Notes: generated from the letters alone by a model not told the origin. A DNA stretch of 64,000 nt from IMGVR_UViG_3300042895_001344:1-64000, one strand, 5' to 3'. Shown: positions 1-64,000, counted from the stretch's first letter. Translations and numbers: made by a program.

Positions 1-418
1 ATGCTTGACGATACTGAATTTCATCTGGTAAGTTATCATACTCTAAGAAATGAATATATTGTTTACCTAATTGTTTAACAAGATTGAAAGCATTTTTCAT
101 TGTCAACCAAATTGCATAGTCGTGATGAAAATCTATTTTATTAGTTATCTTATATGAACCCATATCGGTCCATCTATCACTATTAATACCATACTCAGCA
201 AAATCCTTTTCTAATAATATGTCGTTATTACCATCATATAGATAGTAATCTGCTAACACTTGTATCTCAGGTGAAACTGCATAATGTCCACATAATATAA
301 TGGGACAGTTATAAACCTTTAAACTTATAAGTAATTTCTTTAAAACATTTTCTTTATCTTTATTATCAGGCCAGCAGTCAACTACAAAAACATCATCATT
401 AAATTGTGTATATCCCAT
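1..418 (-). CDS. Partial ORF running off the left edge; hypothetical, probably glycan-related (not in the ORF track)
   Basis: ATG at 418 overlaps the TAA of the upstream gene. Open frame MGYTQFNDDVFVVDCWPDNKDKENV...HFLEYDNLPDEIQYRQA continues to the window edge. Confidence 0.75.
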   Translation of the reverse strand, partial: MGYTQFNDDVFVVDCWPDNKDKENVLKKLLISLKVYNCPIILCGHYAVSPEIQVLADYYLYDGNNDILLEKDFAEYGINSDRWTDMGSYKITNKIDFHHDYAIWLTMKNAFNLVKQLGKQYIHFLEYDNLPDEIQYRQA

Positions 419-1080
419 TATCTTTTTCTTATTAAAATTATTCCATTAAGGAAGGTTATTGATTCTATATCAGTTCTACAATCAGGTTGTACTTTATTTG
501 AATATGGTATTAGTTTATCTTCTCGTCGATCCCATACTGCGGCTTGATCATCTAAGTTCTCAACACCTCTAAAGTTAATATCATCCGTTAATTTCTTGAA
601 GTATTCCATCATACTCTTAGGGTCATTTAAACCTCCACCGTACCAAGGGAAATAGGATGTTGCAACATCTTCAACAATGTACATGCCACCCGATTTAACG
701 TATTGAAATAGTGTTTTAAATGAATAAATAACATGTTCATTCAAATGTGATCCGTCATCTAATATAAAATCAAATGGACCATATTCATTTGAAATTTGAT
801 TTAAAAACTTATCATCATCTTGTGAACCTATTTCAACAAAAATTCTATCTTCCTCATATTTTTTACAATCAGGATTGATGTCAATACCTAAAATATTAGA
901 ACGATAATAATAATCCTTCCAAGTTAATAGTGATTTACCATCTAAGACACCAATCTCCAATATGTTTAATTTATCATATCTGTTAAATGGTAAATACTTT
1001 TCATATTTAACACAATAATTGTGATTGTCGGAAGACTTATCAGTTCCGTATACTTTAGCCAAATTATCTAATGTACTCAT
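418..1080 (-). CDS. Class I SAM-dependent methyltransferase (MycE-like sugar O-methyltransferase type)
   Basis: Motifs GTDK, ILEIGV, GIDI, DFILDDGSH, GGMYIVED. ATG at 1080 forms an ATGA overlap; the track start at 1086 is TTG. Confidence 0.8.
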   Translation of the reverse strand: MSTLDNLAKVYGTDKSSDNHNYCVKYEKYLPFNRYDKLNILEIGVLDGKSLLTWKDYYYRSNILGIDINPDCKKYEEDRIFVEIGSQDDDKFLNQISNEYGPFDFILDDGSHLNEHVIYSFKTLFQYVKSGGMYIVEDVATSYFPWYGGGLNDPKSMMEYFKKLTDDINFRGVENLDDQAAVWDRREDKLIPYSNKVQPDCRTDIESITFLNGIILIRKR

Positions 1081-3812
1081 TTCCAAAAATATATCATTTG
1101 TAAACTGTTATTATTACCCATAAATAATAGATATGAATTGAATCCTAATCCATTCATTTTATTTATAAAATTTGTTCTTAATTCATCATCAAAATCAAAA
1201 TGACTATGATGATATTCCATTGCTATGGTTTTAACTTTTTGTAAGTTCTCATCACTGATACCCGCAAATGCTGCATGTTCTGCTCCTTCAATATCGACCT
1301 TAAGGAAATCAATATGATCCACCAAACCACTTTCAAAAAGATAGTTTAATGTATATGTTTTAACACTATATCCTTCCTGACCTTCAATACCAAAAACATT
1401 TGATCCTCCTAAGTGAGTACTCTCATATAAATTCAATTCTCCAATTTCATGTGCAGCAGCCGCATTAAATAATATTGAACGTGGGTCAGCATTAAGTGAC
1501 AGTAATTTAAAATATCGTCTATCTGGTTCAAATGAAATTACTTTACTTGCACCTTGACTATACGCCCATCTATTAAAGATACCCATATTACCTCCCAAGT
1601 CAACAACAATATCACCTTCATTTATTCTTCTTTCATTACCACCCTTATAATAATCATGTAAATTGAATATCTCATGATAGATTGCTCTTGCCCATCCATA
1701 TTTGTCCGCAATTTCTATTGTTCCACCCTCAACATCTTTGATGTCACCTAAGTTCTCTAACTTATATGTATTAACATCTAATGATGTATAAAATTGTTCT
1801 GATTTATAAAAACTATTATCACGTTTCATCTTAATGAAGTCCATCATAAAATCGGACATCTGTGCATTCTTATTACCGTGGAAATAAAGAATTTGATTCT
1901 TATCTTTTGGTATTGCTTGGTACCCAAATATTCTATTGAAGTTTTGTGGTCCTTCTTCATTCCAAAACTTTAAGAAATGATGTTGTGTTTCATTTGTCAT
2001 TCCATCATCTCCGTCGTAAGATGATGTGTCAAAATTAGATAGTGGTAAATGTTTTTTAAAATTATATTTCCATCTCATTGCATTATCAATACCCTCATCG
2101 TTCCATAGGTATAGTCGTTTGTAATCTTTACCTCCATCTTTCATTACTTCCACATAATGATTAAGGATCTCTTCAAACCACCATTTACATTCTTTATTAT
2201 AGACATACATACAAACATGCATATAAGGTTGTTGTTTTTGAACTCCCCATTCTTTTGCAACTTGTTCGTTGAATAGTTGTGAATTTTTTCCATCATCATA
2301 CCAACCAAAGAATTCTTCCTGAACATGTACATCAGATATTGGATAGTTCTCAATCTCTTTGAAATAAGATTTAATATTATCTACGTTGTAGTTTACGACA
2401 ACATCACCATCCATCCAAACGTAATTATCAAATCCTTCATTAATAGATTCAATACATGCCATTTGTTTCCAATACCATTTATCGTGTTCAGATATCTTTG
2501 GTGTTGTTATCGTTCTTTTGATAATATTTGGATAGTCAAATGGAACCTCACAATCAATACCATATACTATAATCTTACGTTTAGAAAATTCTAATAATGA
2601 TTGAACTAACTTTTCAATAACCGGCATGTATCCGATATTACCAGTTGTGATGAAAGCAAAGTCATCAAATTTATTTTCAAGTATATCTGAAGCACCCTTT
2701 GCAACAGTACTCCAATTAAACTCTTCATGTATTTCTTTTGATTCAGCCACAGCAAATGATTTATGTCGTTTATATTCGTTAAATGCACTTAACATTTGTT
2801 CTCCCAAATTATTCCAATCAGGTTCACAATATTCACCAGGGAAATCTTTATGTTCCACATTAGCAGGTCTTAATCCATCTATCTTTACAGGAATACCTTT
2901 ACCTTCCGCAAACTGTAATTGACCTCCCCAATCTGAGTAAATTGACGGTGTTCCACAAGCCATAGCTTCAATCAACGGTAAGTTCCATCCTTCACTACGT
3001 GCACATGTAACAAACACATCACCCTCTTGCAAATATTTTACATATTCTTCCTGTGGTGTGAATTTTATAAATTTAATGTTCGTTGTGTCTATATTGTGAT
3101 GTTTAACCCTATCTTCAGTTGTTTTAAGTCCGTCAAATGGATAAGGGTTTTCAACTGATGCAATTAACTCCACATCATCCCTATCTTTAAATGTCTTACT
3201 AAACGCACTTAAAACCTCTGTAGTTCCCTTTCTATAATCCCATCTACCAAAATGTAAGAACCTAAATTTGTCCTTCTTTGATGTCTTAGTTAACGGTTTA
3301 AATGTATCTACATCAACTCCCTCAGGAACTATTGATATTTTATGTGATGGATAACCCTGTTCAACCAAACAATCAAATTGCCATTGTGTTGGAACCCATA
3401 CCTCGTCAAAGTAATGTAATCTTTTAAAGAAATTATCGGGATAACGTGTTGATTCCCAAACATTATAAGCTATTTTATAACCATCATAGTCATCATAAAA
3501 ATAACGATTGTTAGTATCAACCAAAACAATATGAACGTCAGGTTTATAACCACCATCATATCCATAGATTGGGTAATCCGACCTACTACCATCCGAATTA
3601 TTAAGAGTTTGAAGAATTAACATATCCTTCATCTCATCTGTAATATAAGGTTCATTATCGTGTGGGGTATCATTCATACCCTTCCAACCCCCACCTATAG
3701 TGGAGTTTCTAACCTTTACTGTGTGGTATTTGTTCAGAGCACAAAAAAAGGACTTTGCGTGGTTAGCATATCCTGTTACTCCAATAAAACATGTATGTAC
3801 AAGTATTTTCAT
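1077..3812 (-). CDS. Multidomain GT4 glycosyltransferase + DxD GT-A-like domain + FkbM methyltransferase
   Basis: GT4 motifs PEGVDVDTF and RSEGWNLPLIEAMACGTP. Central WMDGDVVV. C-terminal VVDLGGNMG, SFEPD, FLKVDIEGAE. Confidence 0.8.
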   Translation of the reverse strand: MKILVHTCFIGVTGYANHAKSFFCALNKYHTVKVRNSTIGGGWKGMNDTPHDNEPYITDEMKDMLILQTLNNSDGSRSDYPIYGYDGGYKPDVHIVLVDTNNRYFYDDYDGYKIAYNVWESTRYPDNFFKRLHYFDEVWVPTQWQFDCLVEQGYPSHKISIVPEGVDVDTFKPLTKTSKKDKFRFLHFGRWDYRKGTTEVLSAFSKTFKDRDDVELIASVENPYPFDGLKTTEDRVKHHNIDTTNIKFIKFTPQEEYVKYLQEGDVFVTCARSEGWNLPLIEAMACGTPSIYSDWGGQLQFAEGKGIPVKIDGLRPANVEHKDFPGEYCEPDWNNLGEQMLSAFNEYKRHKSFAVAESKEIHEEFNWSTVAKGASDILENKFDDFAFITTGNIGYMPVIEKLVQSLLEFSKRKIIVYGIDCEVPFDYPNIIKRTITTPKISEHDKWYWKQMACIESINEGFDNYVWMDGDVVVNYNVDNIKSYFKEIENYPISDVHVQEEFFGWYDDGKNSQLFNEQVAKEWGVQKQQPYMHVCMYVYNKECKWWFEEILNHYVEVMKDGGKDYKRLYLWNDEGIDNAMRWKYNFKKHLPLSNFDTSSYDGDDGMTNETQHHFLKFWNEEGPQNFNRIFGYQAIPKDKNQILYFHGNKNAQMSDFMMDFIKMKRDNSFYKSEQFYTSLDVNTYKLENLGDIKDVEGGTIEIADKYGWARAIYHEIFNLHDYYKGGNERRINEGDIVVDLGGNMGIFNRWAYSQGASKVISFEPDRRYFKLLSLNADPRSILFNAAAAHEIGELNLYESTHLGGSNVFGIEGQEGYSVKTYTLNYLFESGLVDHIDFLKVDIEGAEHAAFAGISDENLQKVKTIAMEYHHSHFDFDDELRTNFINKMNGLGFNSYLLFMGNNNSLQMIYFWK

Positions 3813-3819
3813 TAATGAT

Positions 3820-3847
3820 AATATAATGAAAATATGTGAAAAATCAA
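3820..3847 (-). promoter_or_regulatory. Sigma70-like promoter TTGATT-N16-TATATT
   Basis: Lies 7 nt upstream of the ATG at 3812; the same architecture recurs at 6 other gene starts. Confidence 0.55.
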
Positions 3848-4656
3848 ATCAAATTTTGTTTATTTTTTGGTAAATAATTTATATAACTTGGGAAATTTTT
3901 TGATATAAAATCATGTAGTTTATTTGCATAGGTCTTATTATGGTTAGGCCCTGGATGTCCATTATCCACACCTAAATCTAAATATTTCCCATAATCACCA
4001 TCAAATCTGTTGAGTTCATTATGATCTATCGATGTTATTTCTCTAACATTCCAACCATTCCATACCCAATTACAATTTTTAGATTCTAAAAAATATTTTA
4101 TTAATAAATGATTTTTATACCAATTTACGGTATCCTCATTATAATTTTGTAAATAAGTTAAATATTCTTGTGTTTTAATACCATCATCAGTTTCTTTTAA
4201 ATAACCCCAAGAAGCCGTTGGCATGAACGGTTCAATACCACAATCTTTAGTATATATTTCTCTTCTTAAAGGTGAAGGATACATTATAAATATTAAATCA
4301 GGTTTTATTACATCATAATACGTTAATAAACATCTAACAATGAAATCATTACTTCTACCGCCAGCACCAAAATTAAAATTAACACCATTTGGTATCAATG
4401 ATGTGAATTGAGCTGGCCAAGTTTCATGATCATTAACCGCAACACCTTCGGTATTTGAACATCCAAATGACATAATTTTAAACCCTTCTCTTTTAATACT
4501 ATCACCTCTAAATCCTAATTCATTATATGTGTATGTACATAAACCTGTGTTGTCTGTACCTGATGTTTTAAATATTTTGTTTTTTCGTTCACCTAATTTA
4601 AACTTGTACGATGAGATTTCAAATTCATTAGGGTCCCAATATTTTAGTGGATTCAT
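3844..4656 (-). CDS. SGNH-like hydrolase/acyltransferase
   Basis: FGCSNTEG, GRSN and C-terminal DNGHPG match SGNH blocks I, II/III and V. Confidence 0.6.
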   Translation of the reverse strand: MNPLKYWDPNEFEISSYKFKLGERKNKIFKTSGTDNTGLCTYTYNELGFRGDSIKREGFKIMSFGCSNTEGVAVNDHETWPAQFTSLIPNGVNFNFGAGGRSNDFIVRCLLTYYDVIKPDLIFIMYPSPLRREIYTKDCGIEPFMPTASWGYLKETDDGIKTQEYLTYLQNYNEDTVNWYKNHLLIKYFLESKNCNWVWNGWNVREITSIDHNELNRFDGDYGKYLDLGVDNGHPGPNHNKTYANKLHDFISKNFPSYINYLPKNKQNLI

Positions 4657-5153
4657 ATTAATTTATTTGTTTCTATTTTTATATGTTCGTTTTCTAAAAA
4701 CCATAATAAAGAATATCGTACACCTTCTAAAATTGGTGTTATTTCATGGTCTATTCTTACATCAAATAAATATGTATTCCCAATAACTTTATCTAATGTA
4801 ATTTCATTTGGGTTATACAATTTAAAGTCACCTCCTTCAAAATCACCATTTAATAAAACTCCCACTGCATATAATCTATTATTTCTAATATCATTATGTT
4901 TTCCAAACCAATCACCTTTTACAAATTTATGAAAATGTATAACTTCTTTATTTTTTTTTATCCGTATGTTTGATTGTTCTTCAAAAAATGTTTTAAGTTT
5001 ATCAAACAACCATTTCGTTTCCAACGAATATGTAATTGATTGTGAATTATATTTTCTATCACTCATTATCCAATTTTTAATATGGGTGTCGTTATACGAT
5101 ATTATAGATTCACACTCCTCTTTATTAAATAAGACTTGTTCCTTTATTAACAT
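4653..5153 (-). CDS. 2OG-Fe(II) oxygenase (P4H/PKHD-like)
   Basis: HxD in WFGKHND, FEGGDF, distal H in HEITP, and RYSL. Confidence 0.8.
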   Translation of the reverse strand: MLIKEQVLFNKEECESIISYNDTHIKNWIMSDRKYNSQSITYSLETKWLFDKLKTFFEEQSNIRIKKNKEVIHFHKFVKGDWFGKHNDIRNNRLYAVGVLLNGDFEGGDFKLYNPNEITLDKVIGNTYLFDVRIDHEITPILEGVRYSLLWFLENEHIKIETNKLI

Positions 5154-5685
5154 TTATTCTATATTTTTCTCCGTAAGGAAAATTTTTATTTTCTAATTCA
5201 ACCATATTTAAATAATCTAATATTTTTTGAAAACCATTATTGTAATATAGTTCTTCATATGATATATTAAAATAATCTTTATTTAAATAATTTTCTTTTA
5301 ATCCGTTTTTGATTTGATTAAAATATGATACATCTCCGTCTTTTATTAAATTTTCTTTAAATACCCATGCTTTATCCCAATTATTTGTTTTATTAGCATT
5401 TAACCAAGATTCACTTTGTTCACTTATATTTTCTCTATATAAAATAATTACCTTATCTGATATTTCTATTAATTCTGAAAAATCTGTTTTAATATCATAT
5501 GTTTCTTTAATTAAAATGTGTGGTGTTTTATATTCCCACAATTTTGGTGATACACCATGTTTATACCACTTCCAATTTGGACTTGTTATGGGTTCAAATA
5601 ATGTGGTAAAATTTTTATTACTAAAAAACCAATTAGTTAAGTTGGTTGATCCACTTCGTGGTTCTGCTAGTATTGTTATAACCAT
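5125..5685 (-). CDS. Sulfotransferase-like protein (Stf0/P-loop type)
   Basis: 5'-PSB-like EPRSGSTNL followed by FEP; LYREN; YEEL. Confidence 0.65.
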   Translation of the reverse strand: MVITILAEPRSGSTNLTNWFFSNKNFTTLFEPITSPNWKWYKHGVSPKLWEYKTPHILIKETYDIKTDFSELIEISDKVIILYRENISEQSESWLNANKTNNWDKAWVFKENLIKDGDVSYFNQIKNGLKENYLNKDYFNISYEELYYNNGFQKILDYLNMVELENKNFPYGEKYRINVNKGTSLI

Positions 5686-5771: not shown

Positions 5772-6353
5772 TTATAATAATGTATTTTTTTCTTTTACAT
5801 TAGAAACATTAAATTTAAAATTACCAGCAATTACAATTCTATCTTTAGTTGAATTTGGGGAAATTTCAGGTTTGTGAAGTATTTTTGACGAAAATAAAAA
5901 TAATTCGTCTTCTTCAGGTAAAACTGAAAATTCATTTTTATCAAAACTATATGAGAACATACCTTCATTACCATTTAAATTATTTGGCATTTGTACATAA
6001 TAAGTGAAGGTTAAATCAGTTATAATGGAATTTTTATATTTTCCTCCCATTTTTAAATGGTCATGCCATAAAGATTGTTTTGTTTCATTTCTTGATATAA
6101 AAACCCAAGTCTCTAAACAATAATCTATAACCGTATCAATTATACCATTCTTTTTGAGATAATCAATTGCCTTTTTAGTTGCTATTTCTTTTATGAAAGT
6201 GATTTCCTTTGTGACCAATCCTAATGGAGTTTGTATACCAGGAGAATCATAATCACCTGTTTGGGATGAATATAAATTAATATTTTTTTTAAGTTGACTA
6301 ATTAATATTTGTTTATCGTATGGATAATCTATTTTATATTTTTCTATTTTCAT
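5772..6353 (-). CDS. Putative 2OG-Fe(II) oxygenase
   Basis: WHDH, LTFTYYV, LHKP, RIVIAGN. Confidence 0.65.
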   Translation of the reverse strand: MKIEKYKIDYPYDKQILISQLKKNINLYSSQTGDYDSPGIQTPLGLVTKEITFIKEIATKKAIDYLKKNGIIDTVIDYCLETWVFISRNETKQSLWHDHLKMGGKYKNSIITDLTFTYYVQMPNNLNGNEGMFSYSFDKNEFSVLPEEDELFLFSSKILHKPEISPNSTKDRIVIAGNFKFNVSNVKEKNTLL

Positions 6354-6976
6354 ATTATACTTTTATTATTTTTAAAATCTACAATTGGTTCATCTATATT
6401 TAAAAGTTTATGTAGTTTAACATAAAAATCATGGCACCCTTTCCAACCTGGATGCCAATCTATTGGGTCACCTCCTTCATCTGCAATAGAAGTTACTTTT
6501 ATTAATTCTATAAACTCTTTTGTTTTTTCATAAAACTCATCGTTCCATGTTACAAATATTGGTTGGTGGTGGTTATAAAACATTTTTATTTTCTTAAGAA
6601 ATAAAATTTCATCGTCTCGTTCACCATTTAACCAACTATTTGTTTCTTTAATTCGTAATTCAAACAGTTTTTTTGCAAATAATTTATCCTTATACCATTC
6701 CCAATTTAAATATTTTGAATTATGATTTATTTCTCTTTCCCCAAAATATCTTCTTGGGAATCTTGATGGGGATGTAAAAACTATTATGATTCTATCACCA
6801 TTTGTATAATTTGGTATATTTCCTGTTTGGTATAATATAGAGTGATTATCAGCTCCAAATTTTCCAAATTTAATTACGTTATAATGATTGGATAGATAGT
6901 CCGTCCAATGCATTTTAGGTACTTCCCAATCAACAAAACTATCACCACAAATATATAAATTAGATTTTTGTTTCAT
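6350..6976 (-). CDS. SGNH-like protein
   Basis: CGDSF, GADN, DWHPG. Confidence 0.6.
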   Translation of the reverse strand: MKQKSNLYICGDSFVDWEVPKMHWTDYLSNHYNVIKFGKFGADNHSILYQTGNIPNYTNGDRIIIVFTSPSRFPRRYFGEREINHNSKYLNWEWYKDKLFAKKLFELRIKETNSWLNGERDDEILFLKKIKMFYNHHQPIFVTWNDEFYEKTKEFIELIKVTSIADEGGDPIDWHPGWKGCHDFYVKLHKLLNIDEPIVDFKNNKSII

Positions 6977-7659
6977 TACACTAATCTCATATTTTTGGTG
7001 AAGGGCTTTTCAAAAACATCCCAAACCCATTTTTTTAATTCATCATTAACTTCAATTTTATTTTTTATTTTTGATGTTCCATTCATTTTTTTAATTTTTA
7101 ATACTACACCAAATTTTTCATATATTAAATTTTTGAATTTATCTATTTCGGAAATATCAAATTCATAATCACATTTTGTGTTATCTGTCCAATAATTCTT
7201 ACATGCAAATATCGATAACGTATCGGGTAAGTTTTTATTTATTACATTAAAAAATTTACTATATTCTTTTTGTATTTTATATTCATTATCACAATATATT
7301 GCATCTGCTAAATTTTTATTAAAATATTCATAAATAAAGTTATTATCAATATCCGACCAATTATATTTTAATTCGTTTCTATGAAGATGATTTGATATTT
7401 CAAAAAAATATTCCAATGCACTATACCATCTGTCAAACCAATTTCTTGTGATACAACAAGTTTTTTGAAAACCAAATTCTTCTAATAAGAAGTTTTTTCT
7501 AAAATGAAAATGGTGGTTTGTATTTATATTGGGGTAGGGTTCTTTAGATGTTAGATTTATTTGTAATTGATTATTATTTTTTAATGAATCTTCTATTGAG
7601 ACAGACGCACATCTTGGAATTGAAACCCAAATAAGTTGATTGTTAATAAGAATTGACAT
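6976..7659 (-). CDS. Sulfotransferase family 2-like protein
   Basis: WVSIPRCAS (IPK/RxAS PAPS loop) and TRNWFDRWYS (3'-PB motif RxPxxRxxS). Confidence 0.65.
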   Translation of the reverse strand: MSILINNQLIWVSIPRCASVSIEDSLKNNNQLQINLTSKEPYPNINTNHHFHFRKNFLLEEFGFQKTCCITRNWFDRWYSALEYFFEISNHLHRNELKYNWSDIDNNFIYEYFNKNLADAIYCDNEYKIQKEYSKFFNVINKNLPDTLSIFACKNYWTDNTKCDYEFDISEIDKFKNLIYEKFGVVLKIKKMNGTSKIKNKIEVNDELKKWVWDVFEKPFTKNMRLV

Positions 7660-8089: not shown

Positions 8090-9625
8090 TTAGAGTTGTA
8101 GACATCTATTTGAATAATATCCACAAGCACCTGTTGCCGAACAAACTTCATACATCTTATCACATCCACCAGACCCTACTCCAATTGAATTACATGGTGC
8201 ACAATATGAATTGTGTTCTACTGCGATATATGATGATACGGTTGCAGAATCACCATCTGTTATGGTTAGGAAAATATGTTCGTCTTGTACACCTATTATA
8301 TATCCACTTAATACTTCGGTTTCGTCTTGTATAGATATCACAGTTTTTTCATTAAATGAAATAGTATCATAATTACCAACATTTATTAATAATAATATAT
8401 CCCCTATTTGTAAATTTGATGTAGTTTGTGTGTTTATATCTTCCCCAATTGTTGCCCACATAACATTGTTATTTCTTTTTATTAAATAAACAGAATTTGA
8501 TGTATCTTTCCAATTTGTTTCGTCACTAAAGTTTAGTGTTGTTAATTTAACTGAAACATCAATTCTTTTTTTAAATGTTATTACATTGGTACTAAATGAT
8601 GAATTTGAAAGAAGTTCATTATAATCAACGTTATATGTCCTCAATTCGTTGGCCTCAGTTATGTTAGGTTGATTTTCATATAGTCTAATTGTTTTAACAG
8701 TATCACCAACCTGTAAATCTTGCCCTGTTTTAAAACTACCATCTGCCATTACAACTAAATCCGTATCAAGTAATTTAGGTTTCACCAACCTTTGTGTCCC
8801 TGTTAAGTATCCGTTTCTATCTACATTAGAAATTTGATGTGTTAGACTATCATATGAGTTGTCATTTAATTCTTGCATAACCTTTAAATTACCATATTTT
8901 TTGTATGCACAGATAGGAATCGATTCTAATGTTGGTGGGTATAAGATATTTAAGGAACGAATAATTGTAATACGTCCTTCGTTTAATTTTTCCTCATTAA
9001 ACAAATATTCCATTAAGAAATAATCTTCATTTACATTATTTGTAATAACTTCATTTAATTCTTCAATATTTGAAACTTTAAAAAATTTTGGGTATACTTC
9101 CCTATCATATATTGGAAATCTTGCTTTTAAAATAAAGTTTGGGTGTATACCATTATTAGGTATGGTCGTTATATTTGATATAACTTGTGAAGTTTCATCC
9201 ATATATGCAAACTTAAACCCAAAATTTTCATTCTGAAACAGTTTTAAAAAATTTACTTTATCTTTGCAGTAAGTTTCGTCAACGATTGCTGAAACATCGT
9301 AGGCACTTCTTACAATTAAGTGATTATCACTATCTTCAATATATGGAATTGTAATACCCCCTAAAGTTTCAATAAATTCATATTCTACCCCCAAATTAAC
9401 ACAAGCCTCATTAAATTTTTCACTTACTTGTGGAATTCCACCGATAAATGTGACCTTTACAAAATTGTTGTTTGATACAAAGCTTATAAATTGTGTCAAA
9501 TTTATGGCCCCCTCAGTCTCAGCCGCTAATCTCACATCCCAACCAATATTGGTGTTTATCTCAATTGGTCTTAAATCACCATTTGAATTGTATGCAAAAT
9601 CTGTCCCTAATAGCAATGTTCTCAT
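8090..9625 (-). CDS. Circularly permuted ATP-grasp-like domain + Hint domain + C-terminal Cys-rich peptide
   Basis: N-terminal TDF..G..RPIEINTN, FILKARFP and FLMEY. Hint-like LLDTDLVVMADGSFKTGQDLQVGDTV, GYIIGVQDEHIF and VEHN|S. Then a 39-aa tail with 6 Cys. Confidence 0.7.
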   Translation of the reverse strand: MRTLLLGTDFAYNSNGDLRPIEINTNIGWDVRLAAETEGAINLTQFISFVSNNNFVKVTFIGGIPQVSEKFNEACVNLGVEYEFIETLGGITIPYIEDSDNHLIVRSAYDVSAIVDETYCKDKVNFLKLFQNENFGFKFAYMDETSQVISNITTIPNNGIHPNFILKARFPIYDREVYPKFFKVSNIEELNEVITNNVNEDYFLMEYLFNEEKLNEGRITIIRSLNILYPPTLESIPICAYKKYGNLKVMQELNDNSYDSLTHQISNVDRNGYLTGTQRLVKPKLLDTDLVVMADGSFKTGQDLQVGDTVKTIRLYENQPNITEANELRTYNVDYNELLSNSSFSTNVITFKKRIDVSVKLTTLNFSDETNWKDTSNSVYLIKRNNNVMWATIGEDINTQTTSNLQIGDILLLINVGNYDTISFNEKTVISIQDETEVLSGYIIGVQDEHIFLTITDGDSATVSSYIAVEHNSYCAPCNSIGVGSGGCDKMYEVCSATGACGYYSNRCLQL

Positions 9626-9721: not shown

Positions 9722-9732
9722 TATAAATAGTT
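9722..9732 (-). promoter_or_regulatory. AACTATTTATA motif (putative phage late promoter class)
   Basis: The same motif precedes the structural genes at 56880, 59283 and 62982. Confidence 0.45.
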
Positions 9733-9951
9733 AATTTTTCTCTTTTAGTTCATATTTTATTCATTTATACCAAATTATCTCATATATATAGTATTAAGTG
9801 GGGTTTACATACTAATTTCACAACCTTTTTTTGGGGGGGTCTCAATCTTAATAGATCCACTTTATCCACCATATTGTTAAGAATTAGGTTAAAATACTTA
9901 TAAGACGATATAAAATAGTTTTGAATATATGTCTATTTTTTATACCGTCAT
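9731..9951 (-). pseudogene. Decayed copy of the DUF2061 gene at 11666-11893
   Basis: Colinear nucleotide similarity. Remnant frames RHIFKTILYRLISILT*FLTIWW, SGSIKI and YYIYEIIWYK*IKY carry stops and frameshifts. Same ATGA overlap with an upstream oxygenase. Confidence 0.8.
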
Positions 9952-10427
9952 AATAATCTTTTATTCTTTGTGATCCAAATGGCCATAATTTCTCTACAAC
10001 CCGATGTTATTTCTTTAACCTCATGTTGTTCGGTTTGACCATTAAAGTTAACTAAATCTCCCTTTTTAAAATTTACCAATTCATTATTAACATATAATTC
10101 ACCTCCTTCAAAACTATCGTTTAACATAATCAAATACGTTTTACTTGACTTTACATCTATATGATTTCTAGCATAATAACCTGTCTCATATTTAATATAA
10201 TGTAATGAATATATAACCTCATCTTCCTCCAATTTTATATATTTTATTATAGTACTAACTAATATTTGATTACTTAAATCACAATAAAATATTTCTTTTA
10301 AATGAACTATTTTCTCAAAAGACTTACCATGATATGATATTACATCATTATTTTGATTACCAAAATTATAATATTTTAATATTATATCAATATCGTCTTG
10401 ACTTATATAATTTTTAAAAATATTCAT
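9948..10427 (-). CDS. 2OG-Fe(II) oxygenase
   Basis: NHID, FEGGEL, HEVKE, RE. Confidence 0.8.
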   Translation of the reverse strand: MNIFKNYISQDDIDIILKYYNFGNQNNDVISYHGKSFEKIVHLKEIFYCDLSNQILVSTIIKYIKLEEDEVIYSLHYIKYETGYYARNHIDVKSSKTYLIMLNDSFEGGELYVNNELVNFKKGDLVNFNGQTEQHEVKEITSGCREIMAIWITKNKRLL

Positions 10428-47991: not shown

Positions 47992-48001
47992 AATTAATTT
48001 T

Positions 48002-48682: not shown

Positions 48683-48685
48683 TTC

Positions 48686-48979: not shown

Positions 48980-48982
48980 AAT

Positions 48983-53750: not shown

Positions 53751-53767
53751 ATGATAAATACTTATAA

Positions 53768-53801
53768 TAAATAAAAAAGGAGACTTTTTATGGTCTCCTT
53801 T
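53768..53801 (-). terminator. Rho-independent terminator
   Basis: Stem AAAGGAGAC/GTCTCCTTT with a U-tract on the minus strand. Confidence 0.75.
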
Positions 53802-53979: not shown

Positions 53980-54003
53980 TTTAGTTTATTTTGTTTTATT
54001 TTA

Positions 54004-56880: not shown

Positions 56881-56885
56881 ATCAA

Positions 56886-56896
56886 TATAAATAGTT
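56886..56896 (-). promoter_or_regulatory. AACTATTTATA putative late promoter
   Basis: 5 nt upstream of the ATG at 56880, just downstream of the terminator. Confidence 0.5.
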
Positions 56897-56905
56897 TATT
56901 TAAAC

Positions 56906-56936
56906 AAAAAAGGAGAACTTTTTATGATCTCCTTTT
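56906..56936 (-). terminator. Rho-independent terminator
   Basis: Stem AAAAGGAGA/TCTCCTTTT; similar to the 53768 and 59319 terminators. Confidence 0.75.
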
Positions 56937-56955
56937 ATTATTTTTATTTGTTGTT

Positions 56956-58788
56956 TTACGCACATTGACCATCAGTTCCATTTATGAATACACCACCTGT
57001 GATGTCCATTACTTGTGAGAATGTTTGTCCACCTGAAGCCGCAATACTTTGTGGTCCGTTAAATGCGGTAGATACTGTTAAACATCCATCAGGAGCAACA
57101 TCGGCTATATGTACAACGACCGTTTGTGAACCTGTTAACGGAACTGTTCCTGAGAACCCATCTCCAGGACTTCTTGGAAACACATCATTTGTTGTAAGTG
57201 ATAAACCTCCAATTATAACACTTGTTATTGCACCACCAAAAAATCCATTACTACCTGTGACTTCAGTTGAAACTGCAGGTTCAGGTGTTGCAGTTGGTGG
57301 GAATGGTGTTGGTGTTGGTGATTGTGTTGGTACGTTAGTTGGTACTTGTGTTGGTTCTGGTGTTGGTGGGAATGGTGTTGGTGTTGGTGATTGTGTTGGT
57401 ACGTTAGTTGGTACTTGTGTTGGTTCTGGTGTATTAGTTGGAACTGCTGTTGGTATTGCTGTTGGAACCGCCGTTGGTATTGCTGTTGGTATTGCTGTTG
57501 GTATTGCTGTTGGTATTGCTGTTGGTTGTGGTGTATTAGTTGGTATTGCTGTTGGTTGTGGTGTATTAGTTGGTACTGCTGTTGGTTGTGGTGTATTAGT
57601 TGGTACTGCTGTTGGTTGTGGTGTATTAGTTGGTACTGCTGTTGGTATTGCTGTTGGTATTGCTGTTGGTATTGCTGTTGGTATTGCTGTTGGTATTGCT
57701 GTTGGAACTGCTGTTGGAACTGCTGTCGGTGGTGGCGTTGGAGGTAACGGTGTACTAGTTGGTACTTGTGTCGGAACTGCTGTTGGTACTACTGTTGGTA
57801 CTACTGTTGGTACCGGTGTTGCTGGTAATGGTGTATCAGTTGGTACCGCTGTTGGTATTGCTGTTGGTATTGCTGTTGGTAAAGGTGTATCAGTTGGTAC
57901 GTTAGTAGGTAAAGGTGTATCAGTTGGTACGTTTGTTGGTACGTTAGTAGGTAAAGGTGTATCAGTTGGTACGTTAGTAGGTAAAGGTGTATCAGTTGGT
58001 ACGTTAGTAGGTAAAGGTGTATCAGTTGGTACGTTAGTAGGTAAAGGTGTATCAGTTGGTACGTTAGTAGGTAAAGGTGTATCAGTTGGTACGTTAGTAG
58101 GTAAAGGTGTTGCCGGTAAAGGTGTTACTGTTGGTGTTGCTGTAGGTTCTGCTGTTGGTTCCGCTGTAGCTGGTAATGGTGTTGCTGTAGGTTCCGCTGT
58201 TGGTATATTTGTTGGTAATGGTGTATCTGTTGGTACCGGTGTTGCCGGTATTGGTGTACTAGTTGGAATATTAGTCGGCTCTATTGTTGGTTCTGGTGTA
58301 CTAGTTGGTACATCTGTTGGTACCGGTGTTGCCGGTATTGGTGTACTAGTTGGTACGTTAGTTGGTAATGGTGTATCAGTTGGTACCGCTGTTGGTATAT
58401 TTGTTGGTTCCGGTGTTGCTGTAGGTACTTGTGTTGGAATATCTGTCGGTGTTGGTGTATCTGTTGGTACAGGTGTTGGTATATCTGTAGGTAATGGTGT
58501 ATCTGTTGGTACAGGTGTTGGTATATCTGTAGGTAATGGTGTTGGTGTGGCGGTTGCAACAATTACCGTTGGTGTCGGTGTTGCGGTTGCACAAGGTATA
58601 CTGAAAGTACATGTTTGACTAAAACCAGTAAAGTATAATGAGTAATCTCCCAAATAGTTATCACTAATATAATTGTATGGAATAACATGTGAACCTAAAT
58701 TGATCGTTCCTCCACTACAGGGTGAAAATGTAATTGTAGCAGTTTCACCACTATAATTTGTTGTTAATATCTGAACCGTTATTGACAT
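56956..58788 (-). CDS. Pro/Thr-rich mucin-like protein; N-terminal paralog of 54004-56880
   Basis: Shared [38 protein letters not shown]-terminus, followed by a long PT tandem array. Confidence 0.7.
57445..57720 (-). repeat. Coding tandem repeats: 12-nt (PTAI/PTAV) and 30-nt ([10 protein letters not shown]) units
   Basis: TGCTGTTGGTAT runs and four TGGTACTGCTGTTGGTTGTGGTGTATTAGT-type units. Confidence 0.85.
57878..58110 (-). repeat. Coding 30-nt tandem repeat ([10 protein letters not shown])
   Basis: Five perfect consecutive GGTAAAGGTGTATCAGTTGGTACGTTAGTA copies from 57950, plus flanking copies. Confidence 0.9.
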
Positions 58789-58800
58789 TTTATTTTTATA

Positions 58801-59283
58801 TTAAATTGTTGTTATTTCGTAATTTATATCACATGTTGTATCAAATGGTATTATAATATATGTAATGTCACAAGTCATATCAAATGGTACTACATTATAT
58901 GTAATATCACAAGATGGTACGGATGGTGTTGGTGTTGGTGTACTAGTTGATACTGATGTTGGTTGTGGTGTACTTGTTGCCGGTAATGGTGTAGTGGTAC
59001 TAGTTGGTTGTGGTGTAGGAGTACTTGTTGCCGGTAATGGTGTTTCTGTACTAGTAGGTTGTGGTGTTGGGGTATCGGTTGGATTAGGAGTTGGTGTACT
59101 TGTTGCCGGTAATGGTGTTTCTGTATTTGTTGGTGTAGGTGTTGGTGTTTCTGTTGCCGGTAATGGTGTAGGAGTAGGTGTATTTGTTACAACATTAGTT
59201 GGTGCGGGTGTTGGAGTTGGTGTAAACGTTCCATTGTGAATATTTGGGACTATTTTTAGTCCTCCTGTAAATTGTATTCCCAT
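58801..59283 (-). CDS. Pro/Thr-rich protein with three C-terminal CDI[TN]Y repeats
   Basis: PT stalk followed by CDITY..., CDITY..., CDINY at 13-aa spacing. Confidence 0.65.
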
Positions 59284-59290
59284 AGTACTC

Positions 59291-59301
59291 TATAAATAGT
59301 T
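59291..59301 (-). promoter_or_regulatory. AACTATTTATA putative late promoter
   Basis: 7 nt upstream of the ATG at 59283. Confidence 0.5.
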
Positions 59302-59318
59302 TAATTTCTTAATAAGAT

Positions 59319-59352
59319 AAAAAAAAAGGAAGATTTTTTAGGTCTTCCTTTT
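59319..59352 (-). terminator. Rho-independent terminator
   Basis: Stem AAAAGGAAGA/TCTTCCTTTT with a U-tract on the minus strand. Confidence 0.75.
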
Positions 59353-59370
59353 AATTTTTGTTACGTTTTT

Positions 59371-62300
59371 TTAGAACGTTCCACCGTCTATTGTATTTGT
59401 GAATGTTAAACTACCATCTGAGGTTTTATAACCTAATATTGTAGTCACCACATCACTTGTATCTGTTGTCGGTACTTCACCAAATATGTCGTTAGCATTT
59501 TTAAATGTAACATTTGATCTTGTACTACTTATCAAGTCATTACCGTTAGTTGATACTTTTAATGTACCTGCTACCACTGTGTTTCCTGATACCGATTCAA
59601 CTGTGAATTTATCTGTATTGAATTGTAATGTTGTTCCACTATATTTCAATAAACTATCACCGATTGTGTTGTCAGAAGATGCAATTGGGAATGTTCCACT
59701 TGTTAAACTTGTTTCACTTCCTAATGTTCCTGCGGTCGTTCCAATTACTTTACTTGAATTGTTAGAACCATCAACTGTTAACCAATCATTATTTACTGAG
59801 TCCCATAGTAAAGAACCTGATTGTCCTATTGAACCTGAATCATATCCACTAATACCTGCGTATCTTTGGAATGGTGAGTAAGCATTTACTAAGATAATAT
59901 TATCACCTAATTCAACTGTATTTGATTGAATACTTACGTTTGTTGATGAACCTAATACTTGTAAGTTTCCTGATACAAATAAATTACCACCTAACATTGT
60001 TGCTGAACCTGAACTTACTGTTAATGAACCTGTAATTGATGTGTTAGCATTTACTTGTAGACCTGCTGCAGTTACCGATGCTGTTACCGCACCACTTGCA
60101 ATCTTATCTAATTGTAATCCTGTTACACCACTTGCTGGTATATTATAAAGTCCCGCACCATCACCAATGAACGAACCTGTGAATACAGAAGAAGTTACTG
60201 GTTGGTTAAATTTAACACTTAAGTTTGTTTCCCAAACTGATCCTGTTAAAGCGAATATACTGTCTCCTGAAGATCCTGATGTTCCTGATGAACCTGAAGA
60301 ACCTGAAGAACCTGCTGATCCTGATGAACCACTAGATCCTGAAGTTCCTGCTGTTCCTGAACTACCTGATGTACCGCTTGAACCACTTGTACCTGATGAA
60401 CCATTACTACCTGAAGAACCTGATGTTCCCGCTGTTCCTGAAGAACCGCTAGATCCTGAAGTTCCTGATGAACCTGAAGAACCACTAGTTCCTGATGAAC
60501 CATTACTACCTGATGTTCCGTCAGATCCTGAAGATCCTGAAGTTCCTGATGAACCACTAGATCCTGAAGATCCTGAAGAACCACTAGATCCTGAAGTTCC
60601 TGCAGTTCCTGATGTACCACTAGATCCTGATGAACCTGAAGTTCCTGAAGATCCTGATGAACCTGAAGAACCGCTAGAACCACTTGTTCCTGCTGTTCCT
60701 GAAGAACCGCTAGATCCTGAAGTTCCTGATGAACCTGAAGATCCACTTGTTCCTGATGAACCATTACTACCTGATGTTCCGTCAGATCCTGAAGATCCTG
60801 AAGTTCCTGATGAACCTGCTGTACCTGAAGAACCGCTAGATCCTGATGAACCATTACTACCTGATGTTCCTGATGTACCTGAAGAACCATTACTACCACT
60901 TGTTCCTGATGTTCCGTCTGATCCTGAAGAACCTGATGTACCTGAAGTACCTGCTGTTCCTGAAGAACCTGATGTACCTGCTGAACCTGATGAACCTGAT
61001 GAACCTGATGTACCCGCTGATCCTGAAGATCCTGAAGTTCCACCTGATCCACTTGTTCCTGATGAACCATTACCACCAATAGTAGCAATTACTGTACCTG
61101 TTTGTGCTTCATTAAAGTATACTTTTAAGTTATTACTATCAATAACTTCAATTTCTGTTGGTATAACAACTTTATCTGAACCGTCAAACACATTAATTGC
61201 AGGATATTTGTATCCTAAATTGTGGTTGAATGACCATGTTGTCGATGCTGAACCAATTACTAACGTTTTAGTTTGACCTGAAACAATAACCGCGTTTTCA
61301 GCGTATATTGCGTAAGACGATGTTCCTGCGAATTGAGAATTAGAACCTGAAACATATGTGTTGAACGCTGTTTCATCTAATTTACCCGTTCCAACTGTTA
61401 CACCGTTCAACATTAATGAACCTGTGATGTTAACGGAACCTGTGAATGAATGTACATCGTCTTGTGTGTCACCAAATTTGGTTGAACCTGATTGATAAAG
61501 AACTGAAGATGATACTAATGTAATGTTTAATTCTTTCGCTGTAAGTGTACCATCAATAAATGTATCTCCATTTACTCTGAATGTTCCGTCAGATGCGATA
61601 GATGCACTTACTGAACCACTTACAATTTTATTTAATTCTAATCCTGTTACACCCGAAGCTGGAATGTTATATAAACCTGCACCGTTTCCAACAAATGAAG
61701 ACGATACCACTGAAGCGGTTACCGCTCCAACAACTCTTACTGGATTTGTTGTTGACCATATTGAACCTGTTAATGCAAATAAACTATCTCCTGAAGTACC
61801 ATCACTACCTGAAGAACCACTTGTTCCTGAAGAACCACTAGATCCTGAAGTACCTGCCGTTCCTGATGAACCACTAGATCCTGAAGTTCCTGAAGATCCT
61901 GAAGTACCACTAGATCCGTTAGATCCTGATGAACCACTTGTTCCTGCAGTTCCCGATGTACCCGCCGATCCTGATGATCCTGATGAACCATCACTACCAC
62001 TAGATCCTGATGTACCTGCTGTTCCTGAAGATCCTGAAGATCCTGAAGTACCACTAGATCCGTTAGAACCTGAAGAACCACTTGTTCCTGCTGTTCCTGA
62101 TGAACCACTAGATCCTGATGTTCCTGATGAACCACTAGATCCTGATGTTCCTGTTGATCCTGAAGAACCATCACTACCACTAGATCCTGATGTACCTGCT
62201 GTTCCTGAAGATCCTGAAGATCCTGAAGTACCACTAGATCCGTTAGACCCACTAGAACCTGATGAACCATCACTACCACTTGTTCCTGATGTACCTGCAG

Positions 62301-63003: not shown

Positions 63004-63014
63004 TATAAATACTT
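63004..63014 (-). promoter_or_regulatory. AAGTATTTATA putative late promoter
   Basis: Upstream of the ATG at 62982. Confidence 0.45.
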
Positions 63015-63080
63015 AATTTTTACCAATCTTCGAGTTATTTCTATCTATTTGTAATATATTTTTATTATTAATTTGTTTTT

Positions 63081-64000
63081 TTAAAAACCACCTAAATCCA
63101 ATACAATATTATTTTGTTCTTGTGTTATTACGTTTTGTCCTCCCATTGATATTGAAGCAGAGATAATTTGTGATTGAATTTGAGCTTGCATCATTGCCAT
63201 TGCACCTGATATAATAAGTGATTCTCTTAATGGATCAGTTGATGTTAATGTTGTTGTTCCACGTACTGTTAAATCTCCATCAATAATAACTGAACCTGTT
63301 GTACGTAATGAACCTGTAAAATCATGTTTATCATCTAATGTATCACCGAACTTTGTTGACCCTGATTGATAAAGTATTGAAGATGTTACATAATCAATAC
63401 GTAATTCTTTTGCTGTGATTGTACCATCAATTACTACATCTGTATTAACTTTTAATTTTCCATCAGCTAATGATGCACTTACACTACCACTAACAATTCT
63501 ATCTAAGTTAAGTCCTGTAATTCCTGATGATGGGATATTATATAATCCTGCACCATCACCTGTAAATGAACCGCTAATTGTTCCGTTATTTACAGTTAAA
63601 TCACCTGTGTTAATTTCTAAATCACTATTTGTTAAATCAACAAGACCATTGAAAACATGTAAATTAGATCCACTTGTTAAATACAATGATGAACTGTCGG
63701 TCATTATTGTATTACTATCGGTAATTCCTAATTGAGATGTAATATTTAACGATCCCGTTATTTCTACATCATTTGTTGTCGTCCATGTGCCAGGTGTTGT
63801 TTCGGCAAATAAACTATCTCCGCTAGATCCTGATGTTCCACTTGTTCCCGATGTTCCACTTGTTCCTGATGTACCTGCAGTTCCTGATGAACCTGAAGTT
63901 CCGCTTGTTCCAGCCGAACCCGATGAACCACTAGTACCTGATGAACCATTACCACCGACAGTAGCAATTACTGTACCTGTTTGAGCCTCGTTAAAATATA
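63081..64000 (-). CDS. Partial fibre-like protein; its 5' end lies beyond the window
   Basis: The frame of track ORF 63081-63704 stays open to 63998 (YFNEAQTGTVIATVGGNGSSG..GDSLFAETTPG) and carries the same modules as the other fibres. Confidence 0.8.
   Translation of the reverse strand, partial: YFNEAQTGTVIATVGGNGSSGTSGSSGSAGTSGTSGSSGTAGTSGTSGTSGTSGTSGSSGDSLFAETTPGTWTTTNDVEITGSLNITSQLGITDSNTIMTDSSSLYLTSGSNLHVFNGLVDLTNSDLEINTGDLTVNNGTISGSFTGDGAGLYNIPSSGITGLNLDRIVSGSVSASLADGKLKVNTDVVIDGTITAKELRIDYVTSSILYQSGSTKFGDTLDDKHDFTGSLRTTGSVIIDGDLTVRGTTTLTSTDPLRESLIISGAMAMMQAQIQSQIISASISMGGQNVITQEQNNIVLDLGGF

Follow-up and report, generated by a model that had tools for sequence, protein, structure and literature searches.

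The first 64,000 nucleotides of the viral record IMGVR_UViG_3300042895_001344, referred to here at their full length as the window, hold approximately 45 kb of genes for soluble sugar-making and sugar-decorating enzymes embedded within a cluster of fiber genes. Within this island, a phage-specific module of five genes is built around a tandem pair of GT7 glycosyltransferases (GTs). The reading that we favor, at a confidence slightly short of even, is that the virus encodes O-glycosylation of its own fibers, with the conserved core building the common part of the glycan and a variable cargo decorating it. The support is circumstantial, and fiber sulfation is more speculative than fiber glycosylation, but the five genes form a defined and testable unit even if their target is the host surface. 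The window forms the left end of an IMG/VR record of 217,142 bp (CheckV completeness 65%; G+C about 31%), and among the genes in the remainder of that record are those for a tail sheath, a baseplate wedge, a T4-type major head protein, a portal, a large terminase, and a family-B polymerase. Because the record has sheath, baseplate, capsid, portal, and terminase genes (PHROG matches at E values of 1e-21 to 1e-67), its source is a contractile-tailed jumbo phage of the T4 superfamily, uncultured and from lake water.

A search of IMG/VR with one of the paired enzymes, GT7a, recovered 77 viral loci at 35–100% identity. Four neighbors accompany it in 68–77 of these 77 loci: a Methyltransf_24 protein, a GT2_4-like enzyme of the GT-A fold, the paralogue GT7b, and a twitch-domain radical S-adenosylmethionine (SAM) enzyme, the family of which is present in 69. 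As this core is found in nearly all of the loci while the rest of the island shifts, the core is the constant element, and the genes for sulfation, carbamoylation, and acylation are exchangeable cargo. Full-length matches to the GT7 enzymes with their inserted lectin-like (LamG) domain number zero among 50,697 GenBank phage records, and among 185,579 species genomes they are confined to three phage-type contigs, the cellular matches consisting of the GT-A core without the insert.

By alignment and modeling, the two GT7 enzymes are true relatives of the animal beta4-galactosyltransferase family. In 17 aligned sequences that include both paralogues, the FNRG..LLNIGF, HDxDM, YFGGV, WGWGxEDDDL, His, and DGL signatures are invariant or nearly so, and HMMER aligns these motifs to beta4GalT1. 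Against the Protein Data Bank (PDB), the GT7 profile reaches beta4GalT1 and beta4GalT7 alike at E 1e-42, and a structure model (predicted local distance difference test, pLDDT, 92) finds its best solved match in Drosophila beta4GalT7 (Z 25.8, root mean square deviation 2.2 Å, 27% identity, 206 of 241 residues aligned). In both enzymes a LamG/pentraxin-like domain, best matched by a Bacteroides carbohydrate-binding protein (Z 21), is inserted within the catalytic domain. Transfer of Gal or GalNAc in beta1,4 linkage is putative, from family membership. The GT2-like profile gave no specific assignment against the PDB.

The core is tied to the fibers by position. With fiber-like open reading frames (ORFs) defined as those of at least 250 residues and at least 30% Ser+Thr+Gly, Ser/Thr/Gly-rich ORFs lie upstream of the core in 56 of the 58 loci having 4 kb of upstream sequence and downstream in none of 44, a count that overstates independence because the 77 loci are related to one another. 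In G012, a syntenic close relative that displays the full context of the island (335,630 bp, CheckV 100% complete), as well as in G002, Ser/Thr-rich fiber genes stand on both sides of the island, and in these two genomes as in the window the island cluster forms one co-oriented block with glycosyltransferases. Two other complete genomes likewise have a Ser/Thr-rich ORF on the upstream side, about 6 kb from the core in G022 and directly adjoining it in G019, which has terminal repeats. Co-occurrence over 10 relatives selected by capsid was uninformative, as all are fragments from which island and fibers, being neighbors, are lost together. From 70 kb to 30.5 kb and from 22.4 kb to position 1, nearly every gene is on the minus strand, with overlaps or tiny gaps, and the interval between them (22399–30576) is the single plus-strand block.

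The fiber genes adjoining the enzymes specify 27–40% Ser+Thr, and those with collagen-like repeats 35–40%. In colB, 170 Gly-X-Y triplets form two uninterrupted runs of 80 and 90. Ser (106) or Thr (62) fills 168 of the 170 X positions and Asp the other 2, while Y is Ser in 133 of 170, with Ala (19), Asn (9), and Asp (7) also found. The colB triplets contain neither stabilizing proline or hydroxyproline nor charged pairs, Pro, Lys, and Arg all being absent, and a colB triple helix is putative. In colA, five Gly-X-Y runs totaling 111 triplets alternate with repeated globular modules, a module that recurs 10–11 times in this record and in G002. The DNA repeats of the collagen arrays are only 63–80% alike and mix their Ser codons while the protein pattern is retained, so that selection rather than recent slippage conserves the triplets. 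The Ser-Gly dipeptides that had been proposed as glycosaminoglycan attachment sites arise from this strict triplet periodicity, with Ser/Thr at X and mostly Ser at Y, and have no acidic flanks; that part of the original prediction is withdrawn.

Three Pro/Thr-rich proteins, none with a Pfam match, accompany the collagen-like fibers. PT1 (958 residues) has Pro-Thr linkers joining globular domains, PT2 (56956–58788; 610 residues) is 24% Thr and 23% Pro, and PT3 (160 residues) is 29% Thr and 22% Pro; the N-terminal 64 residues of PT1 and PT2 are 80% identical. Tandem repeats in PT2, notably at 57293–57432, 57509–57646, and 57935–58110, are perfect or nearly so (30 bp x 5.9 copies at 100%, 30 bp x 4.6 at 99%, and 69 bp x 2 at 100%) where the collagen arrays are 63–80% alike, which suggests that the copy number in the Pro-Thr linker has changed recently and that its length may vary between strains. 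Over 54000–60000 the GC skew turns positive while the genes remain on the minus strand, an effect of codon composition (CCN for Pro, ACN for Thr) and neither a strand switch nor a replication feature. The seven small proteins sited between the fibers and the enzymes, which share an N terminus, are probably fiber-associated or distal binding proteins; by BLAST, the LamG members among them have no detectable kinship to the LamG insert of the GT7 enzymes.

Signals for expression have been sought as a further link between enzymes and fibers. A motif, RVTATTTAT, lies 13–70 nucleotides upstream of every fiber gene and stands before the genes for sheath, portal, and further structural proteins as well, in many cases following a hairpin terminator (hairpins occur at 53776–53801 and 59324–59352), and it may be the late promoter of the lineage. 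The motif was examined genome-wide in this record and in G012; 27 of 49 copies in the genome fall within 90 nucleotides upstream of a same-strand ORF, and the count within the window is not above chance. From the last late-type motif (47150) to the core, a search for terminators gave none, so that read-through and co-transcription with the fiber genes are possible, but co-expression of enzymes and fibers from this pattern of motifs and terminators is only a lead. The T4 late promoter, TATAAATA, stands ahead of just 5 of 193 ORFs and was dropped as a candidate. Two lake metatranscriptome libraries (X19 and X20) contain short contigs matching GT7b, GT7a, the GT2-like enzyme, and the methyltransferase (38616–42800), some without mismatch, and one contig of 151 nucleotides bridges the GT7b/GT7a junction. 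These are consistent with expression in the lake, may also be explained by DNA carry-over, and give no timing.

If the fibers are the target, activated sugars would be made in the host cytoplasm during infection by the short-chain dehydrogenase/reductase (SDR), RmlC-like, and thiamine-dependent enzymes of the plus-strand block, and soluble glycosyltransferases would put short O-glycans on the fibers synthesized alongside them, at the proline-free (Gly-Ser/Thr-Ser)n runs and the Pro-Thr linkers. The GT2-like enzyme, or else the GT4 or a GT-B enzyme, would start on protein, and the two beta4GalT-like enzymes would extend on a sugar acceptor, where their lectin-like insert may keep them bound to substrate that is repetitive or already glycosylated, as does the lectin domain of polypeptide GalNAc-transferases. 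Methyltransf_24 and the twitch radical SAM enzyme would then tailor the sugar, and the cargo (carbamoyltransferase, sulfotransferase-like proteins with adenosine 5'-phosphosulfate (APS) kinase, SGNH proteins, oxygenases, and additional GT-B enzymes) would diversify the glycan between strains. The payoff would be stabilization of a weak triple helix, and a hydrated coat that shields the fibers or aids adhesion. A more elaborate proposal holds that lake jumbo phages of a widespread clade coat proline-free collagen fibers and Pro-Thr linkers with a dense mucin- or proteoglycan-like brush of methylated, carbamoylated, acylated, and sulfated O-glycans, laid down by phage-only machinery (the tandem lectin-insert beta4GalT-like pair and the twitch radical SAM enzyme), and that the glycan is needed to stabilize the triple helix. 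Taken in all its parts, this proposal is rather unlikely.

The choice among targets depends in part on what the genome lacks. None of the 57 window proteins has a convincing membrane segment, and a Pfam scan of the window proteins found no flippase, polymerase, lipid-carrier, priming transferase, or exporter genes, which counts against a host-surface pathway, host lipid-linked intermediates being still possible substrates. Searches of the 217-kb record and of G012, complete at 335 kb, likewise turned up no thymidylate synthase (ThyA)-family hydroxymethylase, which known DNA glycosylation needs. Together, these absences make glycosylation of the fibers the best-supported reading.

Several observations nevertheless weigh against it. 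No enzyme of the island is recognized as a protein Ser/Thr-initiating transferase, and those GT7 enzymes that have been characterized add to existing sugars and do not begin on protein. The core is present in the complete genomes G019 and G022, both without collagen-like or Pro-Thr fibers, and of 16 records bearing the module only 5 have collagen-like repeats. In G019, moreover, the toolkit is scattered and the main fiber cluster lies 40 kb from the core. A Ser+Thr content of 24–30% is ordinary for phage fibers, so that the synteny may stem from a gene order passed down within a single clade. Across relatives, the genes for sulfation, oxygenases, and SGNH proteins are present or absent independently, part of the island travels elsewhere without the GT7 module (see below), and the enzyme genes lack RVTATTTAT except for a copy about 100 nucleotides upstream of 8090–9625. 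Thus, the earlier claim that the phage glycosylates its own fibers draws strength from the position of the core and the solubility of the enzymes, and loses some to the genomes that have the core without collagen or Pro-Thr fibers. An island varying independently of Ser/Thr-rich fibers had been named in advance as evidence against that claim, and such variation was found in part, in G019, in G022, and in the free-floating cargo.

The first alternative, distinctly less probable than fiber glycosylation though to be taken seriously, is remodeling of the host envelope. The enzymes would act on lipid-linked or cytoplasmic glycan precursors of the host and alter its surface polysaccharide, blocking superinfection or keeping progeny off debris, and their proximity to fiber genes would reflect only the hyperplastic region usual in T4-like genomes. 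Similar cyanomyovirus sugar islands, such as that of S-SCSM2R with 13 glycosyltransferases, are usually taken as serving host-surface modification (PMC12801897), and homologues of the carbamoyltransferase occur in 148 phage records, mostly of cyanophages and pelagiphages. The free variation of island content and the scarcity of the late-type motif among the enzyme genes fit this alternative as well. So does an Atlas result for the sulfotransferase-like protein at 6976–7659, a Bacteroidota protein cluster that fuses a Sulfotransfer_2 with a Glyco_transf_7C domain, so that in the probable host phylum a single polypeptide couples sulfation to GT7-type transfer. Host remodeling does not readily explain the lack of membrane, lipid-carrier, and export functions, the confinement of GT7-LamG in cellular genomes to phage-type contigs, or the retention of the core beside fiber genes over deep divergence. 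The host itself is probably a member of the Flavobacteriia, consistent with the binning of three contigs with the same module to Flavobacteriaceae or Flavobacteriales genomes. Beyond the window, at the right end of the record (199000–214000), several Thr/Ser-rich ORFs carry Bacteroidota-type signal peptides (M-K-K-L-L... to N-A-Q); these may be host-derived secreted proteins or a hint of the host phylum.

An island of mixed purpose is less probable again, and unlikely overall. Here the conserved core alone would serve the fibers or another virion protein, and the cargo would consist of independent cassettes (APS kinase with the sulfotransferases; carbamoyltransferase with radical SAM and SGNH proteins; the oxygenases) directed at small molecules, nucleotides, or host glycans, so that a sulfated coat would be wrong even if glycosylation were right. 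The relatives offer some encouragement. G022 has only the core, a carbamoyltransferase, a radical SAM enzyme, and a GT4, and is without the kinase, sulfotransferases, oxygenases, and SGNH genes; G019 keeps its sugar block at 114–122 kb, has no sulfotransferase homologue, and has dispersed its oxygenases, SGNH genes, and APS-kinase pair, the last lying 140 kb from the core. Similarly, the cultured Ralstonia jumbo phage RsoM2USA (MG752970, 123.5–129 kb) has a compact cassette, annotated throughout as hypothetical and without GT7, in which a 3844-like protein, a twitch radical SAM enzyme (47% identity), an SGNH protein, and a carbamoyltransferase (33%) correspond to 3844–4656, 34313–35761, 32062–33027, and 13417–15084 of the window; this phage might give experimental access to part of the island. 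Against such a division stand the packing of the genes into one co-oriented block with glycosyltransferases in the window, G012, and G002, and the fibril glycosylation cluster of a giant virus that likewise holds sulfate-metabolism genes (PMC9614988).

A third possibility is that the glycosyltransferases and tailoring enzymes decorate modified bases of the phage DNA to evade restriction. Phages with glycosylated DNA bases, like T4, were reportedly described by Pyle and colleagues in 2024. Membership in the T4 superfamily, the presence of the T4 alpha- and beta-glucosyltransferases among structural neighbors of the GT-B model (Z about 10), and the naming of this option for phage glycosyltransferases in the moraphage paper (PMC12619734) all favor DNA hypermodification, which is nonetheless highly improbable given the missing hydroxymethylase, a TET/JBP search that found nothing but had no working positive control, a GT-B similarity generic to the fold, and the deoxy- and branched-sugar synthesis, sulfotransferases, and eight SGNH proteins, none of which is known as a feature of DNA glycosylation systems.

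The inventory on which glycosylation of the fibers is argued was compiled from Pfam, NCBIfam, paralogue analysis, two structure models, and language-model searches (see the table). It bears out, with corrections, the gene content given in the original prediction, that is, sugar-nucleotide enzymes and glycosyl-, methyl-, carbamoyl-, and sulfotransferase-like proteins with SGNH proteins and cysC beside fibers. Where at least 10 GT-like genes had been counted, there are 10 domains in nine genes, of which three are above the Pfam cut-off, one is assigned at family level, and four or five are assigned through a confident GT-B model. The window further encodes three methyltransferase domains, eight SGNH-like proteins (all with a GDS/GCS-F-T block and sub-threshold Pfam matches), six oxygenases, and three radical SAM enzymes, the additional N-terminal domain of the one at 36520–38619 being paralogous to 35796–36542. 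The plus-strand block suggests, from its predicted enzymes, synthesis of a deoxy sugar, possibly with a two-carbon branch. The GT-B model, of 18507–19784 (pLDDT 94), has alpha1,3-fucosyltransferases of GT10 as its top solved neighbors (Z 11.3 and 10.9), in line with an Atlas lead to GT10 (0.79); its paralogues are 24510–25796, both halves of 19784–22363, and more remotely 33027–34313. Modeled similarity to the T4 glucosyltransferases, SdgB, and Gtf3 is fold-level only. The listed TTG start of 19784–22363 yields a hydrophobic leader that is probably untranslated, an ATG 15 codons in being likelier.

Among the decorating enzymes, the two sulfotransferases are the weakest items. Language-model and structural similarity (template modeling, TM, scores of 0.58–0.60 to Sulfotransfer_1/2 models) are the sole basis of these candidate assignments; neither protein has a Pfam match, and 5125–5685 has no PDB sequence match either. 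The proposal of sulfotransferases thus keeps its Atlas scores of 0.97–0.98 and TM of about 0.6 and finds no counterpart in Pfam, although some homologues are labeled NodH-type sulfotransferase by the Joint Genome Institute. The APS kinase, judged by its motifs, is genuine at family level though short. All 22 of its PDB matches are APS kinases and its P-loop and I-D-G-D-D-L-R motifs are readable, while its 145 residues compare with 175–210 in solved enzymes and PDB and Pfam matches span residues 3–106 only. No ATP sulfurylase was seen in the window. The nucleotidyltransferase-like protein that adjoins the kinase in this record, G002, G012, and G019 is at least 94% identical across more than 120 sequence clusters (3781 matches), far better conserved than its neighbors. 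One idea is that it partners the kinase as a minimal adenylylating enzyme for sulfate or a sugar phosphate; as an ATP sulfurylase it was rejected, the search having turned up generic HxGH similarity only.

The proposed parallel with the rhizobial Nod enzymes survives as a functional resemblance and not as an orthologous set, the NodU model giving 166 bits where its equivalog cut-off is 1000. Of NodPQ there is the APS-kinase half alone, no acetyltransferase of the NodL type turned up, and the methyltransferases are of the Methyltransf_24/21 type. The 2-oxoglutarate (2OG)-Fe(II) oxygenases obtained no specific PDB assignment. Prolyl hydroxylation of the Pro-Thr proteins was considered as their function and set aside, since G019 and G002 have oxygenases without Pro-Thr proteins. 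At 25798–27447 an SDR-type epimerase/dehydratase for nucleoside diphosphate (NDP) sugars is fused to a 2OG-Fe(II) oxygenase domain, which hints that some of the six oxygenases act on sugars and not on protein prolines. With this fusion and the Pro-Thr-free relatives, a sugar substrate is at least as likely.

Table. Features of the window and its immediate flank (positions from the first letter of the window)
Feature	Position	Strand	Basis or remark
Core module, four overlapping or adjacent genes	38616-43271	-	Pfam, alignment, model
Methyltransf_24	42540-43271	-	Pfam
GT2_4-like GT-A	41690-42547	-	Family-level Pfam GT2_4, matched by 13/16 homologues
GT7a	40046-41461	-	Pfam Glyco_transf_7N/7C 72.7 and 68.0 bits (cut-offs 27, 23)
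GT7b, paralogue of GT7a	38616-40049	-	Pfam Glyco_transf_7N/7C 58.6 and 66.7 bits (cut-offs 27, 23)
Radical SAM block	30562-38619	-	Adjoins core; Pfam Radical_SAM weak, paralogy
Twitch-domain radical SAM with extra N-domain	36520-38619	-	NCBIfam NF033640, 300 bits (cut-off 170)
Twitch-domain radical SAM	34313-35761	-	Part of radical SAM block
GT-B-like	33027-34313	-	Distant paralogy to 18507-19784
SGNH-like	32062-33027	-	GDS/GCS-F-T block
Small conserved protein, no assignment	31634-32062	-	No usable Pfam/NCBIfam match
Weaker radical SAM	30562-31731	-	Pfam Radical_SAM, weak
Seven small proteins, common M-x-x-N-x-x-G N terminus	43296-50161	-	Alignment, paralogy
Laminin_G_3 (ConA-like lectin) proteins, four of the seven	starts 43296, 44959, 47173, 48002	-	Pfam
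Two small proteins without Pfam match	44227, 48983	-	Shared N terminus
No-assignment protein	45745-46104	-	No usable Pfam/NCBIfam match
Gly_rich_2 protein	46114-47145	-	Pfam
colA, collagen-like fiber, 1175 aa	50165-53692	-	Pfam Collagen E 1e-40; Ser 23%, Gly 18%, Thr 12%
Three Pro/Thr-rich proteins	54004-59283	-	Pro+Thr 32-51%; between collagen genes
colB, collagen-like fiber, 1203 aa	59371-62982	-	Pfam Collagen E 1e-69
Third collagen-like fiber, C-terminal part	63081-64000	-	1742-aa ORF extending to genome position 68309
Fourth collagen-like gene	68312-70012		Beyond window; follows third
RVTATTTAT copies	47150-47158, 53754-53762, 56887-56895, 59292-59300, 63005-63013, 9723-9731	-	
Nucleotide-sugar block	22399-30576	+	Pfam, paralogy; SDRs, RmlC-like, E1-alpha/E1-beta-like, GT-B paralogue, two SGNH-like paralogues
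Three SDR epimerase/dehydratases	22399-23370, 25798-27447, 27449-28423	+	Pfam
RmlC-like 3,5-epimerase	23372-23917	+	Pfam
Split thiamine-diphosphate E1/transketolase pair	23914-24549 (E1-alpha-like), 30031-30576 (E1-beta/transketolase-like)	+	Pfam
GT-B paralogue	24510-25796	+	BLAST paralogy with 18507-19784
Double GT-B fusion, 859 aa	19784-22363	-	N-half resembles 33027-34313; C-half resembles 18507-19784 and 24510-25796
GT-B enzyme	18507-19784	-	Structure model
Four SGNH-like paralogues	15809-18510	-	BLAST paralogy
DUF5672 protein, candidate GT	15088-15849	-	Pfam
NodU/CmcH/TobZ-type O-carbamoyltransferase	13417-15084	-	Pfam E 1e-60 and 1e-65
Short APS kinase, 145 aa	12821-13258	-	Pfam 64.5 bits (cut-off 21.1)
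HxGH nucleotidyltransferase-like, 128 aa	12438-12824	-	Generic HxGH similarity
Asp/Arg-hydroxylase-like cupin	11890-12441	-	Pfam
2OG-Fe(II) oxygenases	4653-5153, 5772-6353 (weak), 9948-10427, 10431-10991	-	Pfam
No-assignment proteins	3844-4656, 8090-9625, 11032-11598	-	Nothing usable in Pfam at E up to 10 or NCBIfam
Sulfotransferase-like	6976-7659	-	Atlas score 0.98, TM 0.6
SGNH-like	6350-6976	-	GDS/GCS-F-T block
Sulfotransferase-like	5125-5685	-	Atlas score 0.97; P-R-S-G-S-T-like N-terminal loop readable
GT4 fused to C-terminal FkbM methyltransferase	1077-3812	-	Pfam, above cut-off
Methyltransf_24	418-1086	-	Pfam
Gene cut by contig end, C-terminal 139 aa	2-418	-	707 aa in G012, then another collagen-like gene

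The lineage is widespread. Its closest cultured capsids, those of Microcystis phage Mel-JY01 and Flavobacterium phage immuto, are about 38% identical, over 580 IMG/VR contigs have a capsid at least 75% identical to this one, and the DNA of the window turns up again, nearly unchanged, in 16 or more metagenome runs on lake water dating from 2020 to 2024. If these phages do glycosylate their own fibers, virus-encoded, host-independent protein glycosylation would reach beyond giant eukaryotic viruses and a small number of mycobacteriophages to abundant aquatic T4-like jumbo phages, and the sugar islands of marine and freshwater myoviruses, so far only guessed to serve host remodeling, would gain a function. 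Glycan-coated fibers would have consequences for adsorption, host range, and aggregation, and for what becomes of viral particles as organic matter. New reagents would also follow, including a bacterial-virus branch of beta4GalTs with a lectin-like domain, a GT10-like GT-B family, and collagen scaffolds of Gly, Ser, and Thr only.

Comparison with animal beta4GalT1 and beta4GalT7, the latter a linker enzyme of proteoglycans, shows the signature motifs and the metal- and base-binding residues all to be kept. The phage enzymes differ in an insert of about 230 residues, mainly LamG/pentraxin-like, between the WGWGxEDDD loop and the C-terminal His/DGL; they are soluble, lack a signal anchor, form a tandem pair, and have no xylosyltransferase or other linker enzyme alongside. 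The parallel once drawn with the proteoglycan linker therefore holds for the kinship of the GT7 enzymes and fails for the pathway, no GT14, GT31, or GT43 having been found in a Pfam scan of 58 ORFs.

In cellular systems with comparable repeats, glycosylation genes (GtfA/B, SdgA/B, and deoxy-sugar genes) lie near the BclA and adhesin genes that they serve. SdgB and Gtf3 are among the structural neighbors of the GT-B model here. The nap of BclA, the collagen-like glycoprotein of the Bacillus exosporium, and the serine-rich-repeat and Ser-Asp-repeat adhesins consist of hair-like filaments that are densely O-glycosylated with the help of deoxy-sugar genes (PMC6222408, PMC10050317), and their type of repeat resembles that of the phage fibers, although BclA has Gly-Pro-Thr triplets where these have Gly-Ser/Thr-Ser without proline. 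By analogy, BclA, the giant-virus collagens, and the galactosyl-threonine collagen of Riftia appear better models for the fibers than do proteoglycans (PMC6222408, PMC9614988, PMC10141479).

Among viruses, the fibril clusters of Mimivirus, Moumouvirus, and Megavirus and the capsid glycosylation of chloroviruses share with the island virus-encoded nucleotide-sugar pathways, soluble multidomain glycosyltransferases, and methyltransferases, which in those viruses modify surface proteins of the virion within the cytoplasm. Both also have collagen-like genes, and one of the giant-virus fibril clusters that have been reviewed includes sulfate-metabolism genes (PMC9614988). Those are eukaryotic viruses with experimentally determined glycans, whereas this tailed phage is known from its genes alone, and its enzymes are instead GT7 with a lectin-like insert, twitch radical SAM, and GT10-like GT-B. 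Mimivirus collagen, moreover, is modified on hydroxylysine, while the triplets here contain no Lys or Pro. Mycobacteriophages, according to those passages of PMC12619734 that cite Freeman et al. 2023 on their capsid and tail glycans, likewise use phage-encoded glycosyltransferases to place O-glycans on their own structural proteins. As described there, the targets are the C-terminal tails of capsid and tail-tube subunits, the genes a handful, and the hosts Actinobacteria, in contrast to an island of about 45 kb beside giant repetitive fibers.

The sugar islands of T4-like cyanophages (P-SSM2, S-SCSM1, S-SCSM2R), the function of which is putative, resemble this one in their aquatic hosts, many glycosyltransferases, NDP-sugar epimerases, RmlC, Nol-like carbamoyltransferases, and 2OG oxygenases. 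They differ in being without GT7-LamG and the GT10-like GT-B family, and collagen fibers with only Ser/Thr are not reported beside them. Virus-encoded virion glycosylation, collagen-like phage fibers, and aquatic myovirus sugar islands are thus known already (PMC9614988, PMC12619734, PMC12801897). What is new is a phage-only module of GT7 with a lectin insert, fixed beside fibers, together with collagens of Gly, Ser, and Thr only and a GT10-like GT-B family that has no Pfam model.

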